From: Bugula neritina
Taxonomy: Eukaryota > Animalia > Bryozoa
Length of the DNA stretch: 64,000 bases
Assembly: GCA_964035545.1 (NCBI GenBank)
Contig: OZ037769.1
Span: 17,204,633 to 17,268,632 of the forward strand
Direction of reading: 5' to 3'
Position 1 is the stretch's first letter. Every line of letters begins with the position of its first letter. Both the position numbers and the translations under genes were made by a program. The notes under the pieces were generated by a model. That model searched no databases and was not told where the DNA came from. It worked only from the letters and a program-made list of their open reading frames with translations. This document shows, piece by piece, positions 1-41,152 of the stretch.

Positions 1-212
1 ATGACCTTAGCAACTAGGGTAAGAAATGTGAACATAATGGTAAACGTATTCATAGACACTATAAAAGAGAGACAACTCCCAGATACTGTCTGTACTAAGC
101 TGTATGTTCTACTTGGCACTCTGTATGTATTATAGTACAGCAAGGTAGTCACTTGACTATAAAGAGTTTCATTATGAATGATCATTACGGTAGTTGAGAG
201 TTGCACACCCAC

Positions 213-2324
213 CGGCACTATGATTCCAGCTACTCCAATCGGCTCTTTTCTTATAATGGATCTTCTATTAGTTACGGGGAACTCAATTGTCTCCCCATAC
301 ACTCTCCTAGCCTCAGCCGAATACCAGTCTAGAAATGAGGCTGCATACATCATCTCCCCCTTCCCTTCAGCTAATGGCTTTCCCTGGGAACGTAATGTGA
401 CAGTCTAAAGCTGTGAAGATGTGCTGTATGTATGCTGTGTTACGTCTAGTCACTTTAGAGTAGATGTACAGTCTACTTACTTTATTACACAACTTACATT
501 CTCTTCTGTTAACATCTCTCCAAGTTCTGGAATGTTCTCCAATATCAAACTGTACCATTTGTACAGGAGAGCACTTCTTTCCTGTAGAAATAGTAGTTTC
601 ACTTTGACACTAAAGTTTTTTCACTTTGATATTAGAGTAGTTTCACTTTGATATTAGAGTAGTTTCACTTTGCCACTAGAGTAGTTTCACTTTGACACTA
701 GAGTAGTTTCACTTTGACACTAGAGTAGTTTCACTTCATTATATAATATAAAGTCATACCTTTGCTGTCTTCTTACTCCACGGACCAAATGCCTCATAGG
801 CAGCATCTACCGCTGCCTTCGTATCTTCTGCGTCCAGATCATACACCTCTCCAATGAGACTGCCATTCTTAGGGTTGAACACTACAAACCATACTTCTGT
901 GTAAACACATTACCTTACTAACAAGCTGTACAGTTTCTAGGTACAGTTACAGTATTGTGACCTTATCCTGACCTTGAAACAGCTTCTCTGCTCTTCCTTT
1001 CACCCACTCTCCATTAATATATGACTCGGACCTTCTCAGACTCTCTGACATGATTGTTGAAGTGTGCAAGTTTTTACTCTGTAGGAACAAACAGATAGCA
1101 ATCAGTTTATAAGCTATGCTGCCAGGCAGCACCTTAGACACTACTGTCTACAGGCAGCACAGAGGGAAAAGTTTCAACTCCCCTCCCCTGAGCAGCTCCA
1201 TGTACTGGTTGAGTACAACAAATACTATTCTATAACAAATTTTGATTTTTTATAAATGATTAATGATTCGTGTGGTCAGGATCAGTGAGCCTAGCTTGAG
1301 AGTTATATATGGCATGCTATCCTAAGATTCTGTGATAATCACATTACTCACTGGGATGGTTTATAAGTTAAAACACAGGCTATAAACAAGGCTAAGTGAG
1401 AAAACACAGCTAATCTGTTAAAGACATTGAGCGTTAAAGATCCAACTATTAAAATATAGAGCATGTGTAAATTAAAACCAGCTACTAGCCACTCAGAAGC
1501 ATCAACACGCATGAGTTTGAATTCAAATTGATAACGTAGTAACTGAAGGTGTTATTACTATCATATTATTGCGTCTTATTCTAATCCTTTGGTAGTCATG
1601 CATAATCAGCATGCAAACTATACTAAATTGAAAACTTATCCTTTTAATTTATGTTTATCCCAAGTTCAAGATCACTAGTTACTATGAATATTAGTATTAC
1701 CTAATAATTGACCACCATTAACAAACTAATCATCATATTATAATGATAACAATAAAGGATCAAACCAAATTACAGTCTCAAACAATGAGAATATTAAAAT
1801 AATCTAGTGTAATATGCCAACCATAATTAATGGCAATTATAATAACCATAAAAGTTTATTCTATTGTACATTTAATATATGATCAAATAAAACACCACAA
1901 AAATATTCTGTAAATAACCTAATAAACATAGGACAACAGCAAAACAAAGCATCATAATAATCAAGTTAGGTAACCCACTCTAGGACATATATTATGGGAA
2001 CAATATGAACTGTAACGTAGATTTCATCTCCTATACAACTGTACAATATTGAATATGATTAGGTAGCCCTACTATAAGATGTGCTACAGAGATGACAATG
2101 CATCAGCTAGCAGGTTAAACACAACACGACACTAGCACTCATATACAAGCACTACAGTGGTGAATTACAGCCACATTCTTACATGATACTTTCATACTTA
2201 CAGAGAGAGCAGAGAGCAAAGGTGAGGAGTTATACAGAGCTGAATGCGTCACACACTGCCTGCTGACACAGTTAAGTGATGAGAGAAAGAGTCTAACAAC
2301 AGCACTAGGTTTGCAGCTGGCCAT
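213..2324 (-). CDS. ALDH5A1: Succinate-semialdehyde dehydrogenase, mitochondrial (5' part; continues off the left edge)
   Basis: Phase-consistent GT-AG exons 2202-2324, 973-1078, 760-881, 498-581, 213-383. They give a transit-peptide-like N-terminus (MASCKPSAVVRLF...SKNLHTS), then [90 protein letters not shown], the SSADH-type ALDH N-terminus. Confidence 0.88.
592..736. repeat. Intronic 22-bp minisatellite (gtagtttcactttgacactaga, ~6 copies)
   Basis: Direct tandem copies filling most of ALDH intron 582-759. Confidence 0.9.
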
Positions 2325-3349
2325 GTGACCTCTAGTTGACCTTGTGACACGCCCACTTCAACAAACCACTAATCAAGTTAAGATGAATACAAGAACCCTG
2401 GGAATGTCTATATGCATAAAGGGTGTATAACTTAGATGACATTTCCTTCACAGAGATGTTCTATAATGTCTCCAAGCCTACACTGTGGAATGTAAAGCAG
2501 TTAATGAATACGACAGAGCAGCTACCAATGCCTAGATGACATATATTAGAATAAACATACAAAATGCTAGAATGTTTAGTTAGTTGGCAGCTGGTATTCA
2601 GAGGTTACAATGTGTGTCTAATATATTGACACCATGCATTATATCAGCAAATTTAGTTACAAGCATTAAAGTGAGATCTTCCACATCATTATACCATTAT
2701 AACAATAATAACTTATGCAAAATACATAGAAACATATTCAATTTCCTACATTCATATTTTGTAGCTATTATGCAATATTTGATGACCATTATGTAGTACT
2801 TGTCACCATCCCTATTGGTATCCTTGACATTGTGATTGTGGATTCATGAACATAATCATTAGGAATCAATATTATTATTATAATTATTAATATTTTCACC
2901 AAAATCATGCATCTATCTCTACTTAGTATGAATATTAATTCGAAAAGTGAAATGGAATTTGAGTAAAATTAAATGTTAATACTAATAGTAATAGTATTAC
3001 TGCAAGTGTAATAGACTAATAGTATTATTATTATCAATTGCAAATACAATCAGCATCACCAATATCAATATGAATATGAAGACTTGAAGACTATCACCAA
3101 CATTCTCAATATTAGAAAATCAATACCAATATTATTACTATCAAATTTAAAGTATCAGTATGAGTATCACTGAGAGTGAGTATGACTATCACTATGAGTA
3201 TGAGACTGAGAGTGAGTAGACATGATATCAGTATGAGTATCATATGATCAGATCACTATCAGTATGAAATTCATAGTCCATATGTCTATGAAACATAATT
3301 ATCACTACAAATATCAGTAAGACTATCACAATGACTCAGACTTGGATGG

Positions 3350-3510
3350 AAAAAATCTCTCTATCTTCGCGCACATGACATGTAAACTCTTCGCAGGTAT
3401 TCGTTTTGTGCACCGCTCATTGCGGGGTACGCTGTTGTATTTTAACCTCTGCGTGTTCTTACAATGCTAATGAATAGAACATGCAAAATCCGACCAATCA
3501 GATGCGTTCA
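3350..3510 (-). promoter_or_regulatory. Probable promoter / 5' UTR exon region of ALDH5A1
   Basis: Local CpG-containing island with CCAAT (ccaatcag ~3495) in AT-rich surroundings, 1 kb upstream of the ATG. Confidence 0.4.
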
Positions 3511-4775
3511 CCAGTTCCAATATCTCGTCATCCTTATAAAATAATAATATTATTATATAAAATATTGTAAGTTCCGCTACAAAATGAATGCTTCTGAAAC
3601 TAGTTGTGCAACTTTTGTTATACATGTTTTAGTTTCTTCCATATCTTAAACTTGCGAGTCTGGAGTAAATGACTAATTAAAACCGGCAGCTGCAAATTAT
3701 ATTATACTGTCTGCAAGCATGCCCTAGATGAGTTTTACCACAACACTGGCTGTTGCTTTACTTTGTGGTTTCTACTCTAAAATGCACGGGTTGTCTGGCA
3801 GCTGGACATGGAGCATGTGATGTGAAGTTGACACATGAATCTGATTGGTTGGGCGTTGCTTGACCTGTTGACCTCACCGGTTGAGTTATTTATACGCTGT
3901 CTATCATCATGATTGGTGCTACTGGCATTGCAAATTACATAATAATAATATGATGGATTACAATGCAGAGTGACAATGCCATTGTATGTTTCTGGTAGAC
4001 CAGGACAAAAGTCACAAAATCTCAGGAAGTTCTGTATCACTTATTGAACTTGCTGTATGCAATATATACCCCACATATCCATGATTACTTGGTGACATAT
4101 CAGCTACAGGGTGAAATAGTCTGCCTTCGTTCAGCTGCCATATTGTTTACATATAGCCACATTCCTTAAGTGACATCCAAGCTAAGCTTTCCACGACCCA
4201 ACTTATAACCCCTACACTTACCCCATGCACATCAGTAGCCTTTAACCAACAGTGATCAAGATGTGTCCTAGACAGTCTGATAGAATACAATATCTAACAA
4301 ATGTAACCTTGCATATACATGGCAAATAAACATTGTATTCAATTACCTGATAGAACTATGCAACCCTGCAGAAAATATGCCAACTCTGTATTTCATAGCT
4401 AAAGCAAAGGAATTGGCTTTCAAGTTGGACTGCATGCAAAATTGTCACTAATAGAACATCAGATATATAATAAGTTTATACATTCTCTAAACTGACGTAT
4501 GCCTCAATGTCCAATAAAATAAACATGTGCAGCACAAAGTCATTTTGACGGCTGAAGCTCAATTATACAATTCCCGGCTTTACAATTGAAATATAAACTA
4601 CACTTAGTAAATGCAGGTGTATATAAGTACATGCATAACATTAGTAGAGTACCAAGGTTATTCTTGCATCTTCATGTTATACGAGAAGTTAGTACAGCTT
4701 ACTTTTCTCTTCCACCTCTTTAGCTGCCCTGACTCATACCATAACATGATAGCTAACTGTCAACAAGCTAATGCC

Positions 4776-4875
4776 AAAAAGCTTTCACCAAAAAGCTTTC
4801 ACCAAAAAGCTTTCATCATAGAGCTTTCACCAAAAAGCTTTCACTAAATAGCTTTCGTTAGAAAGCTGTCACTAA
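4776..4875. repeat. Short 14-bp tandem repeat (aaaaagctttcacc)
   Basis: About 6 degenerate copies seen directly. Confidence 0.8.
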
Positions 4876-5814
4876 ATGCTCCTGTTACAAACAATAATTT
4901 CATATACATGTGTATGACAATAACTTTATTGCACAAGAATTATTGGCCATCCCCAGACTAAGGGATTATATTGCTGCCAAAGCTTGAATATATCTAACAG
5001 TGGTGTGGTTACTGCACTGTAGACTGTAGAGGCAGCACTTGATATACTATGCTACTATTGCAACTATACCGCATATACTGCATGTCTACTCAACCAAATT
5101 TAACATGTCAGCTTTTCCTTTAGTCAATGAATAGCCACTTGCTTACTCAAGCAGAAGGATGCTGTGCTGATAATTCTGAGTTTTAAACTAACTAAAATTT
5201 AGATTTAATCTTTTCATTTTATCTTTTGTTATTTTGCAACCTCCCTTGAAACACTTTTATAATAGAAAGCAATGAAACTTTTTGTAATGTGCCCTATATA
5301 AGATAATCTGTAGGTATGCATTCTATTGAGAAGTTTTCAAGCATAATATTTCAACTCCACAATTTTGGAAAATGTGATTATAAAGTGTACTAAAGGAAAA
5401 TAATGCATGCTGTAGTAAAAGTTGCAGCCCAAGTATATTTCAGAAGCATACATGTTGCAGTCAAACTCACAGAATCTTTCTAAAAGTTTATTGGTGGAAT
5501 ATTTTGGTTAGTGCACACCTCTGATTGAAGTTGAGTTGCTGTCATACAAAGGTATAGAACAAGGGCAGACAACTCTACAGTTGCAACACTATCCGTAATA
5601 AAATGCCAATCAATATTAATTATAATATAGCCACTATGAACACTTAGTAGTGTGCGCTTCTTATTGGTCCACTTATATACTTTACAACAATGTAAACTCT
5701 TCATTGCAGAATCGATTGAAATTATGAGATTGTAAAAATATAAATTTATTTTTAGACCTTGAGCTTACAAATAATAAATTAAGTATTTAGCAAAATATAA
5801 CAACAAGGGGATCC

Positions 5815-5888
5815 ACTGGACTGATATCGGGTTAACTCAGTGACTAAGTCATTGCAGAGAAAACTGTCATTAATAATACAACTCCAAA
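5815..5888 (-). promoter_or_regulatory. Candidate type II SECIS element in the SELENOS 3' UTR
   Basis: Minus strand reads uggaguug-uauuauua-AUGAc-aguuuucucug-c-AA-ugac(uua)guca-cugaguuaacc-cGAu-au-cagucca. It shows an AUGA/GA quartet, helix II with 7 of 11 WC pairs, unpaired AA, an apical ministem and helix I. AATAAA follows at 5745-5750. Confidence 0.6.
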
Positions 5889-6044
5889 AATAATCAAAAC
5901 CAACCTCTGAATACTTTATGTAGAGAGAGCATAATGTATAACATATGTATAATATATATAAGACTGGTTTTGATATTTGTGATAAGTTGATTAAGTCCAG
6001 AAAATGCCTTGCCGACTCTCTCAGTGAATGCATAGCACCCTGTG

Positions 6045-6098
6045 GAGCACAACTCCTATATGTCAGTTAGTGAGCACAACTCCTATATGTCAGTTAGT
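6045..6098. repeat. 27-bp direct duplication containing a branch-point-like CTAAC (minus strand)
   Basis: gagcacaactcctatatgtcagttagt x2, just inside the acceptor of the putative 3' UTR intron. Confidence 0.85.
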
Positions 6099-6221
6099 GA
6101 GAGTTTCAGTATACAGGGGTGAAGGTCGCCTGTTAGCGGCCTGCTTAGAAAATGCTATGCAGAGCAGAGAGAGAGTCTGTAGAGAGATGCCGGCGAGTTA
6201 CCTCAGCGTCGGCATCGAACT

Positions 6222-8121
6222 TTAACCTCATCCACCCCCGGCAGCGGGGCCACGCCTCTCTCGTCTCCAGGAAGTTTCACTTCTATCGCTGCCCATCAGT
6301 GGACTATAGTCTAAGACAAGGTGAAGGTCATTATATAACTATATACTATATAATGATATACTGTATAATGATATACTATATAATGATATACTATATAATG
6401 ATATACTGTATAATGATATACTGTATAATGATATACTATATAATGATATACTGTATAATGATATACTGTATAATGATATACTGTATAATGATATACTATA
6501 TAATGATATACTATATAATGATATACTATATAATGATATACTATATAATGATATACTATATAATGATATACTATATAATGATATACTATATAATGATATA
6601 CTATATAATGATATACTATATAATGATATACTATATAATGATATACTAACCAGTATCTCTTAGCCGTGATCTATTACTTGGTCTGGTACTTGGTGTGGCC
6701 GAAGGCTCTTCTAGAGTCTATATAATAAAAACACAATGCTGAGTATCACAGGCTATCAATTAAGCCAATCACAGCACTCCTCGCTATATCTACTCACAAA
6801 GCAGCAACATGAGAGAGAGGGAGAAAGAGAGAGAAAGAGAGAGAGAGCTGTGTAAGTGAAATGGAGTCACACCTTTTTAACCTTTGACCTGTATCCTTGT
6901 CCAGATTGATGTCTCTCCCAGTCTTCCAGCTTTTCTTGTCTTTTCTTCTCAGCCAGCTACAAAATGACACGTGTTATCAATGTGGACATAACTCCAACCA
7001 CTAGTAAACTAGTTTTCCAAGCAGCGGATACTTACAGCAGCCTGCTTGGCAGCGTGTTCCGCTGACTTCTGGTCGTGCTCTTCTTGCAGACGTCTTCTGT
7101 GAGCGTCCATGGCAGCTTGTCGTCTCTCTATCTCTGAAGCGTCTGCAGAAGAACTCTTCAATTTATTATTGGGTGAAATATTATGTTAGTATTGTTCACA
7201 TAGATTTGTTATTCTACTTAATACGGTGCCACCAAAATCTTTTAAGTATCAAAAATAATGTTGATTCACTTATTACTAGAAACAATATTATACTGGTGAT
7301 ACATGCCATATTTCTTGTGAGCTGCAAGTTGAGATTTCTGCCGTAAGTTTGTGAGTATAGGCTCTAGAGCCGACTTCCACAAGAAATAAAGTGCGACAAC
7401 TCCAAAGAGTACGACCCAGCCATACTGAGCCAAGTATGAAGTGGCTGTAAAGTCAGAATGACAATATAACATGACTATTTTACTTTTCGAGGATAATCAC
7501 TTCAGCAACAACTTAACTGTTTTTAGTTTTTACTAGTACCAGTGCATTTGAAATAATTATATTAGCAGTCGAGCACTGCGTCTGCTGGAACACAGTGACA
7601 GTGGATGTGACAGTAATTACCAATTTAGATTACATTCCCAACTGAAGACAAATGAACTGAGGTTTGCCTATGACTATTGAGTATCACAATTTCTCAACAA
7701 AGCTACTCATACTGTTAGATTGTTAGTGGTAGAATTAGATTATCACCTGTAGGCTGTATCACTATCAGTTACAGTATCAGTGGCACTCACAGTATGAGCA
7801 TTACTATTAAATTTAATTAATATTATTATTACTATTAGAGTATTACTGTTGAAGTAAAAATCACCTATAGTCATACCGATACTCAATATCGTAGAAAGTT
7901 AATCATAGTGATACTATTAGTGATACTCATATTCGTACAAACTCATCTATCAGTGTCATACTGATAGTGATACTTAGGATTCTGTTCTCAAATTCAAATT
8001 GAAATGACAATACTGAAAGTGAATACCGATTCGGCGATTCCGAATACAGGATACCTGTGTAGTAAAATTGATATATGATTGGTGGATCTTGGTTAATAGG
8101 AAGTCTTTCTTCGCCGTCCAT
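6222..8121 (-). CDS. SELENOS: Selenoprotein S (VIMP), 183 aa, Sec at the penultimate residue
   Basis: Exons 8055-8121, 7307-7444, 7036-7142, 6873-6956, 6651-6717, 6222-6310. Contains a YGW TM helix, a coiled coil (ERRQAAMDAHRRRLQEEHD..EKKRQEKLEDWE), and the C-terminus DYSPLMG..SWRRERRGPAAGGG-TGA-GGT-TAA, matching the SelS ending SWRPGRRGPSSGGUG. Confidence 0.93.
6338..6647. repeat. Intronic 15-bp minisatellite (atatactatataatg, ~20 copies)
   Basis: Fills SELENOS intron 5; source of the spurious IYYIM ORF. Confidence 0.95.
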
Positions 8122-39300: not shown

Positions 39301-40458
39301 ATGTATTGTGTGACAGTGTAGTGTGACAGTGTAGTGTGACAGTGTATAGTGTGACAGTGTAGTGTGACAGTGTATAGTGTGACAGTATAGTGTGACAGTA
39401 TAGTGTGACAGTATAGTGTGACAGTGTAGTGTGACAGCATAGTGTGACAGTATAGTGTGACAGTATAGTGTGACCACACTCACCTGAGCATCAAGCTGAA
39501 TGGAACTGTCAATAGAAATCTTGAACTTGCTACGAGCTGTTAGCCTGTTTATACTTCTTCTTTTTTCACCTTTAGAATAAAACTTCCCTCGACACTTTAA
39601 ACATCTAGGACCTGCATAATATTAACTTATTGTATAATATGCAAATATGACTTTATAAATAAATAAATATACAATATATAATACATAGTTAGATAAATCA
39701 ACATACAATGCTTATAAATTTATTCAATTTCATCAAAAGTTTAAATAAAAAACATGGTTAAAAATTTGACAGCTTCATTTAATTGAAATGCAAAATCTTT
39801 ACAGTTTGTATATTCTACAGTTACTCATACTATTCTACAGTTACTCATAATATTCTACAGTTACTCATAATATTCTACAGTTACTCATAATATTCTACAG
39901 TTACTCATAATATTCTACAGTTACTCATACTATTCTACAGTTACTCATAATATTCTACAGTTACTCATAATATTCTACAGTTACTCATAATATTCTACAG
40001 TTACTCATAATATTCTACAGTTACTCATAATATTCTACAGTTACCCATAATATTCTACAGTTACCCATAATATTCTACAGTTACTCATAATATTCTACAG
40101 TTACTCATAATATTCTACAGTTACTCATAATATTCTACAGTTACTCATAATATTCTACAGTTACTCATAATATTCTACAGTTACTCATAATATTCTACAG
40201 TTACTCATACTATTCTACAGTTACTCATAATATTCTACAGTTACTCATAATATTCTACAGTTACTCATAATATTCTACAGTTACTCATAATATTCTACAG
40301 TTACTCATAATATTCTACAGTTACTCATAATATTCTACAGTTACTCATAATATTCTACAGTTACTCATAATATTCTACAGTTAGCTACAATTAAATGAAT
40401 GTGTAGACAGCTACCAAATGTGCCAACTTTACTCACCACCAGCTTCAGTTAAACTCAT
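33395..40458 (-). CDS. Large uncharacterised multi-exon protein with a 13-aa tandem repeat and an acidic coiled-coil region
   Basis: Exon chain from ATG 40458 via ~39485-39612, 39212-39282, 38823-38939, 38518-38690, 38158-38242, 36308-37688, 35930-36088, 35748-35811, 34677-35611 and further small exons to TAA 33395. Central junctions are phase-checked; the others are approximate. No family recognised. Confidence 0.7.
36096..36285. repeat. Intronic 27-bp minisatellite
   Basis: gtagaggtcaaggtaacacagtataca x ~7. Confidence 0.9.
36360..37050 (-). repeat. Coding 39-bp repeat (HGVLPDNVAVRST x ~17)
   Basis: In-frame within exon 36308-37688; more degenerate LPxN copies extend to ~37570. Confidence 0.9.
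37706..38140. repeat. Intronic 17-bp plus 21-bp minisatellites
   Basis: cagcgtataatatata(ta) array followed by a cagtaatacaggtaatatata array, filling the intron. Confidence 0.93.
38968..39185. repeat. Intronic 21-bp minisatellite (cagtatagtctagatattata x10)
   Basis: Direct tandem copies. Confidence 0.95.
39308..39474. repeat. Intronic 13/15-bp minisatellite (gtgtgacagtata)
   Basis: Direct tandem copies abutting the donor. Confidence 0.93.
39810..40383. repeat. Intronic 20-bp minisatellite (tattctacagttactcataa x ~28)
   Basis: Near-perfect array. Confidence 0.97.
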
Positions 40459-41066: not shown

Positions 41067-41152
41067 CGACTCCGGTGGGACTCGAACCCACAACCTCCGA
41101 ATGGCATCTAACAACTAGAAGTCCGACGCGCTATCCATTGCGCCACGGAGCC
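41067..41152 (-). tRNA. trnR-TCT: tRNA-Arg(TCT) with a 13-nt intron
   Basis: GGCTCCGTGGCGCAATGGATAGCGCGTCGGACTTCTA[gttgttagatgcc]ATTCGGAGGTTGTGGGTTCGAGTCCCACCGGAGTCG. A and B boxes present, intron 41103-41115 one base after the anticodon, TTTTT terminator just downstream. Confidence 0.96.

Follow-up and report, generated by a model that had tools for sequence, protein, structure and literature searches.

A selenoprotein S gene and the hairpin behind its stop codon

The 64,000-nucleotide (nt) stretch of Bugula neritina DNA analysed here, referred to below as the window (assembly GCA_964035545.1, contig OZ037769.1, positions 17,204,633 to 17,268,632), carries on its minus strand a six-exon gene, as read from the window sequence, for the selenocysteine (Sec)-containing protein selenoprotein S (SELENOS). 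Its stop codon is followed, after a short spacer, by a stable GC-rich RNA hairpin. Positions are those of the window and all features of the gene are on the minus strand unless another source is named. A preliminary description of this DNA had identified the gene as SELENOS and this stands: exons 2, 3, 4 and 6 match the Pfam family Selenoprotein S (PF06936) in colinear order, and the gene is selenoprotein S of a bugulid bryozoan. Each of these exons was searched separately, unjoined to the others, and scored below the 29.8-bit cut-off; the sum is about 90 bits. PF06936 was found in one copy only in the 216-Mb genome, so SELENOS is single-copy.

Relatives were collected in two ways. A HMMER scan with exon 2 returned P0001, a genomic open reading frame of 68 amino acids that is 98% identical to exon 2, and P0002, a full-length protein of 191 amino acids. 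P0001 is carried by L009 and L010, two host-associated metagenome contigs that we treat as a sibling genome and that are 84–94% identical to the window over the whole gene; P0002 and its cluster members represent a second relative, species B, known from 13 polyadenylated metatranscriptome contigs (L007 and L012–L023) of 13 different sample records. A profile search added 65 SELENOS proteins, the majority of which came from molluscs, a brachiopod, a hemichordate and transcriptome entries. One further sequence, L011 (obtained through P0004), was rejected as SELENOS; its region 119–708 has a SelS-like N-terminal transmembrane segment and then, in another frame, a glutaredoxin-like CPFC segment, and is no ordinary SELENOS.

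Exon 1 (8055–8121) begins with the ATG at 8121–8119, encodes an N-terminus that aligns with the relatives P0002 and P0005 and ends at the donor CAG/GUAUCC (the slash marks the splice boundary). Exon 2 (7307–7444) contains the transmembrane segment, covers PF06936 positions 31–67 and is 49% identical to P0002; exons 3 (7036–7142) and 4 (6873–6956) cover positions 77–107 and 111–137 respectively, and the coding part of the last exon (6222–6310) covers positions 168–192. Exon 5 (6651–6717) was recognized by its open frame, its consensus splice sites and its colinearity with P0002, and the join of exons 2 and 3 was placed by alignment of ...HKKYD with the same protein. Intron 2 is of the GC-AG type, with a GC donor at 7306–7305 (AUG/GCAUGU) and no frame-keeping GT nearby. 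Intron 5 (6345–6650) is nearly filled by a 15-nt AT-rich unit in about 18 tandem copies, a period taken from the spacing of motif matches, and the copy number differs in L009.

The frame ends GGG-TGA-GGT-TAA, with the Sec codon TGA at 6230–6228, a GGT codon and the stop codon TAA at 6224–6222. This GG-TGA-GGT-TAR ending, which places Sec in the penultimate position of a G-G-U-G C-terminus, is common to all nine of the other taxa fetched. In the coding sequence just 5' of the Sec UGA (6233–6275), ACUUCCUGGAG can pair with CUGCCGGGGGU in a stem of 11 positions (9 pairs, several of them G-U), which may simply mirror Gly/Pro/Ala-rich codons.

The hairpin itself spans 31 nt (6186–6216) and occupies nt 6–36 of the 3' untranslated region (UTR), being separated from the UAA by the 5-nt spacer AGUUC. 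Its outer stem has 7 bp (GAUGCCG with CGGCAUC); above it come an asymmetric internal loop (5' strand ACGCU, 3' strand GC), an inner stem of 3 bp (GAG with CUC) and a GUAA tetraloop (6201–6198). In RNAfold it is both the minimum free energy and the centroid structure, with −17.2 kcal/mol over 53 nt and z = −2.1, 6 of 200 dinucleotide shuffles folding equally well or better; over 70 nt of 3' UTR the window fold gave z = −1.2. Nucleotides 1–40 of the 3' UTR fold at −16.7 kcal/mol, a value matched by 0.07% of all 40-mers of the window (both strands) and by 0.8% of those matched for GC content. The position and fold of the hairpin resemble those of the mammalian SELENOS stem-loop known as SL1 or PSL (Bubenik, 2013, PMC3628699; Cockman, 2019, PMC6844570). 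A K-turn in the internal loop was considered and rejected, the 3' strand having no GA, and no known protein-binding motif in Rfam was matched to the hairpin.

Conservation of the hairpin in relatives

Between the stop codon and the end of the hairpin (36 nt), L009 differs from the window by a single substitution, located in the loop, and is predicted to fold in the same way; L010 has the same hairpin, and the same downstream element for Sec insertion, as L009. In species B, where the rest of the 3' UTR cannot be aligned to the window, a hairpin of the same architecture begins 1 nt after the stop codon (z = −4.9). Its outer stem is longer, its internal loop is again ACGCU and leads into GAG, the inner stem has 4 bp and the loop reads UUGA. 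Analysis of four distinct sequences with RNAalifold showed that the outer stem of the window and L009 differs from that of species B by two compensatory changes, G-C to A-U and C-G to U-A, and by a compatible change of C-G to U-G. While the outer stem varies, the sequence of the internal loop and inner stem is constant between the lineages, and the tetraloop reads GUAA here, UUAA in the sibling and UUGA in species B. Within species B the internal loop is polymorphic (U/G), with ACGCU in L007 (position 728) and ACGCG in the other twelve contigs (L012–L023).

The hairpin is therefore conserved, with support from covariation. It could nonetheless be asked whether a functionless GC-rich palindrome had arisen by chance and looks conserved in the sibling simply because the divergence time is short. 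The modest z scores in the window would fit this, as would the low divergence: we counted about 25 substitutions in about 350 nt between L009 and the window, i.e. roughly 7% in the UTR, at which 2.5 substitutions would be expected in 36 nt, not far off the one observed. However, the hairpin is an outlier among the 40-mers of the window, analogous hairpins occur in oysters (see below), and in species B it persists, its internal loop retained and two of its pairs exchanged by compensation, in a UTR that is otherwise unalignable. We consider a chance palindrome very improbable.

Donor-like and acceptor-like sites in the 3' UTR

The preliminary description had proposed that the hairpin hides a functional 5' splice site, and that regulated splicing from this site, either to an acceptor at 6040 or past the Sec insertion element, forms an on/off switch for Sec that was inherited in common with, or is convergent on, the one that generates mammalian SELENOS variant 1. 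The sequence features on which this was based, namely the hairpin geometry, the GAG/GUAACU, the acceptor AG and the 162-nt spacing, were confirmed in every detail. The donor-like GAG/GUAACU lies at 6196–6204, its GU (6201–6200) falling in the tetraloop, and the acceptor-like AG (CCACAG/G) lies at 6040–6041; from 6201 to 6040 there are exactly 162 nt with GU...AG ends and a branch-like motif, although the duplicated CUAAC that had been noted there belongs to an exact 27-nt tandem duplication (6045–6098).

Several observations favour such a switch. By sequence GAG/GUAACU is as good as the five donors that the gene actually uses; a branch-like CUAAC and a CACAG/G acceptor follow at the right distance; this genome has both the GU and the AG, the sibling neither; and human SELENOS does splice from within SL1, thereby losing its Sec insertion element. 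The comparison with relatives points the other way. In L009, GAG/GUAAC reads GAGUUAAC (G6201 = T), so that the GU is lost, and CACAG/G reads CACAT/G, so that the acceptor AG is lost as well. Species B, whose loop is UUGA, likewise lacks the GU, and in all 13 of its mRNA contigs the 3' UTR is continuous, with no deletion variant, and colinear with the genomic 3' UTR of the window; these contigs reflect the dominant form and a minor isoform would not show. The distance from the stop codon to the Sec insertion element is 359 nt in the species B mRNAs versus 351 nt in unspliced genomic sequence here. AGGTAA occurs by chance at about 0.35 per kb per strand in the window, and GUAA is also a GNRA tetraloop, which gives a structural explanation for the same four nucleotides. 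The human donor, moreover, is located in the stem, at nt 8, and not in the loop. Splicing to 6040 would retain the Sec insertion element and therefore could not switch Sec off, and no acceptor beyond that element has any support.

Of the features that the preliminary description would have expected in related species, the hairpin is thus present and the donor is absent, and we regard an ancient or convergent splice switch as quite unlikely. The GU of the loop is one species' version of a variable tetraloop and not a conserved splice donor, and the main mRNA most likely carries its 3' UTR unspliced.

The remainder of the 3' UTR

A candidate Sec insertion sequence (SECIS) had been suspected between 6040 and 5815, and one was found at 5879–5818, although it is weak. 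It was revealed as a conserved block by comparison with species B and is of type II, with AUGA at 5870–5867, AA 13 nt later (5853–5852), a mini-stem of UGAC with GUCA (5851–5841) and the 3' GA at 5828–5827. Helix II is weak, two of its nine positions being U.U and one A.C, but contains two compensatory pairs (U-A to C-G and C-G to U-A), and its third pair reads A.C, G-C and G-U in the three lineages. Full-model alignment to Rfam SECIS_1 (RF00031), in a search of 121 nt, placed the elements of both species in the same register; the scores, 12.7 bits for this gene and 14.2 for that of species B, compare with a gathering threshold of 35. A genome-wide search with RF00031 gave two weak matches only, the best at 25.5 bits, and the model is therefore insensitive in this genome. 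Larger Rfam searches returned no SECIS (the whole window at the gathering threshold; 5000–7500 and 1–6300 at E up to 10), and four custom SECIS scanners missed 5879–5818 because of the U.U mismatches, although they found two control SECIS elements of this genome (L005 and L006).

Three other SECIS candidates were rejected: 3419–3360, which has an asymmetric core and lies 2.8 kb downstream in promoter-like sequence; 4872–4711, which is a tandem repeat; and one with GUGA at 6279, whose stem lies inside the coding sequence and is without SECIS features. A likely poly(A) signal, AAUAAA, is located at 5745–5750, 77 nt after the SECIS; in species B mRNAs AAUAAA follows the SECIS by about 80 nt and precedes the poly(A) tail.

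Between hairpin and SECIS, a long-range stem is predicted in which a 5' arm (6153–6177) and a 3' arm (6014–6037) form two 9-bp helices around an internal loop. It is predicted both here (6014–6177, z = −4.7) and in L009 (4926–5250, z = −4.6); the 3' arm is unchanged in L009, and two L009 substitutions fall in the internal loop. The stem encloses the 27-nt repeat mentioned above, a minisatellite with two exact copies here (6045–6098) and eight in L009. In this predicted fold the variable repeat would sit towards the apex, where changes are tolerated, and the structure would bring the UGA and the SECIS effectively closer together. The UTR piece 5990–6225 is unique in the genome and therefore no transposon. 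No SPUR-like conserved block was found between hairpin and SECIS when the window was compared with species B.

Occurrence of stop-proximal hairpins in other SELENOS genes

The age of the hairpin was surveyed by folding the initial 70 nt of 3' UTR in other SELENOS genes. Strong stop-proximal hairpins were found in oysters, both in L025, an oyster-like transcript whose protein C-terminus closely resembles Crassostrea (z = −5.0), and in Crassostrea virginica (z = −4.4). In bugulids and oysters alike the hairpin starts 1–5 nt after the stop codon, and the distance from the UGA to the first pair is 11 nt here, 7 nt for species B and about 10 nt for oysters; no sequence is common to the oyster and bugulid hairpins. 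Those of oysters (649–718 of L025; 16115–16184 of L027) are about 60 nt long and each contain two mutually pairing CACGUG palindromes. Both oyster species also have GUAUCUG at UTR nt 5–6, in the 5' arm of the stem.

Other features of the window

A short tandem repeat with the unit GTGAAAGCTTTTTG occupies 4780–4870, where contig depth in a DNA run rises from about 115 to 500–830 and contigs break; the unit is therefore repeated elsewhere in the genome. A pattern search also picked out a 20-nt unit, ATGAGTAACTGTAGAATATT, that is repeated in a long tandem array at 39825–40368 (minus strand). A tRNA gene of 86 nt lies at 41067–41152 (minus strand; Rfam, 55 bits), its length being that of a class II tRNA or of a tRNA that contains an intron.

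A probable role in selenocysteine recoding

Taken together, these observations make it probable that the hairpin is a conserved, selected member of the known SL1/PSL class of SELENOS stem-loops, akin to the hairpin named SRE in SELENON, and that it acts in Sec recoding in an mRNA with an unspliced 3' UTR. The spacing between hairpin and UGA suggests that the helix would stand at the mRNA entrance of the ribosome: with the UGA, or the UAA two codons on, in the A site, the hairpin would meet the mRNA entry channel. Other recoding stimulators, the SELENON SRE among them, occupy this position. Placed there, the hairpin could tune Sec insertion versus termination, and might do so together with the type II SECIS 351 nt downstream.

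In mammals SL1/PSL (nt 3–36 of the 3' UTR) modulates Sec insertion in a position-dependent manner (PMC3628699; PMC6844570), and SL1 had already been reported as structurally conserved in 32 mammals and four non-mammals, including Ciona and Xenopus.

A recoding role has to be weighed against several points. The direction of the effect is mixed in mammals: SL1 aided Sec insertion in vitro when in its native position (PMC3628699), whereas deletion of PSL raised recoding about 2.5-fold in cells, where unrelated sequences could substitute for it (PMC6844570). The covariation comes from three lineages and comprises two double changes only. Evidence on splicing comes from the mRNAs of species B, as the single run that covers the locus consists of DNA contigs with even depth through intergenic DNA; no transcript-derived SELENOS of this species was found in the protein collections searched, including with the C-terminal half of P0002 as query. 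The GU and the AG both differ in the sibling, which we estimate would happen by chance in about 1.8% of cases at about 7% divergence. Finally, no fold above shuffles was seen within 70 nt of the stop codon in Lingula, Saccoglossus or two further taxa (L008 and L024), and the hairpin is therefore not required for SELENOS in general.

This last result also bears on the deep conservation that the preliminary description had considered. With significant hairpins in two oysters, none in these four taxa and no common sequence between the groups that have one, such conservation found no support; the stop-proximal hairpin seems instead to be a recurrent but patchy trait of SELENOS 3' UTRs, for which common descent across phyla is unproven.

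The improbability of a joint difference in GU and AG in the sibling led us to retain a slim chance that the two sites mark a young, lineage-specific 3' UTR intron peculiar to this genome. If so, with the intron excised the hairpin would lack its 3' arm, the long-range stem would lack its 5' arm and the SECIS would lie 162 nt nearer to the UGA, giving a species-specific isoform in which Sec insertion is retuned but not abolished.

The hairpin might alternatively have been conserved for a reason other than recoding, with ACGCU-GAG serving as a protein site for mRNA stability, localisation to the endoplasmic reticulum or 3' end processing. The constant sequence of the internal loop and inner stem, next to an outer stem that differs between lineages, is in line with this, and hints at a sequence-specific partner of the ACGCU-GAG loop; further, deletion and replacement of PSL in human cells suggested that it takes no active part in Sec insertion (PMC6844570). 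Against this, the lack of a matching protein-binding motif in Rfam offers no candidate partner, and the fixed distance between stop codon and hairpin in bugulids and oysters fits an effect on the ribosome. A purely non-recoding role is thus unlikely in our judgement, and a recoding role remains the preferred explanation.

With these findings the stop-proximal SELENOS stem-loop, so far mainly mammalian, extends to bryozoans with covariation, with analogous hairpins in oysters; the element is patchy among invertebrates and its tie to a splice donor not general. This helps to separate a hairpin that acts on the ribosome from one that gates splicing, two roles that are entangled in the mammalian data, and the ACGCU-GAG internal loop provides a concrete target for mutagenesis.

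Comparison with known systems

The SECIS has the AUGA, the AA 13 nt later, the mini-stem above the AA and the 3' GA of type II elements (RF00031), all in the register of the model; it departs from typical members in its weak helix II and in a score of 12.7 bits that is well below 35.

As in human SELENOS variant 1, a GU lies within a stop-proximal hairpin. In the human gene 3' UTR splicing removes the SECIS, in transcripts that make up 5–16% of the mRNA, whereas the sites found here are not conserved and a 162-nt intron would keep the SECIS.

With the SRE of SELENON the bryozoan element shares a stable hairpin at a short spacer from the Sec UGA, where it would meet the ribosome decoding that codon. 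As cited in PMC3628699, the SRE belongs to the coding sequence and follows the UGA by 6 nt; the bryozoan hairpin differs in lying in the 3' UTR, 11 nt after the UGA and past a true stop codon.

The closest comparison is with mammalian SL1/PSL. No sequence similarity has been demonstrated between the two, no SPUR-like block was found between hairpin and SECIS in the bryozoan UTR, and the bryozoan hairpin is known from sequence and folding; the human donor, 8 nt into the UTR and in the stem, is conserved in mammals, unlike the loop GU of the window. Both, however, belong to the same gene family and form a stem-loop, about 30 nt in length, that starts a few nucleotides past a stop codon standing two codons beyond the penultimate Sec UGA; compensatory changes keep the structure of each as the sequence drifts, and a SECIS follows a few hundred nucleotides downstream. 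By position and shape, the bryozoan hairpin can therefore be viewed as a likely counterpart of mammalian SELENOS SL1/PSL and of SRE-type hairpins, with which it may share a role in recoding.

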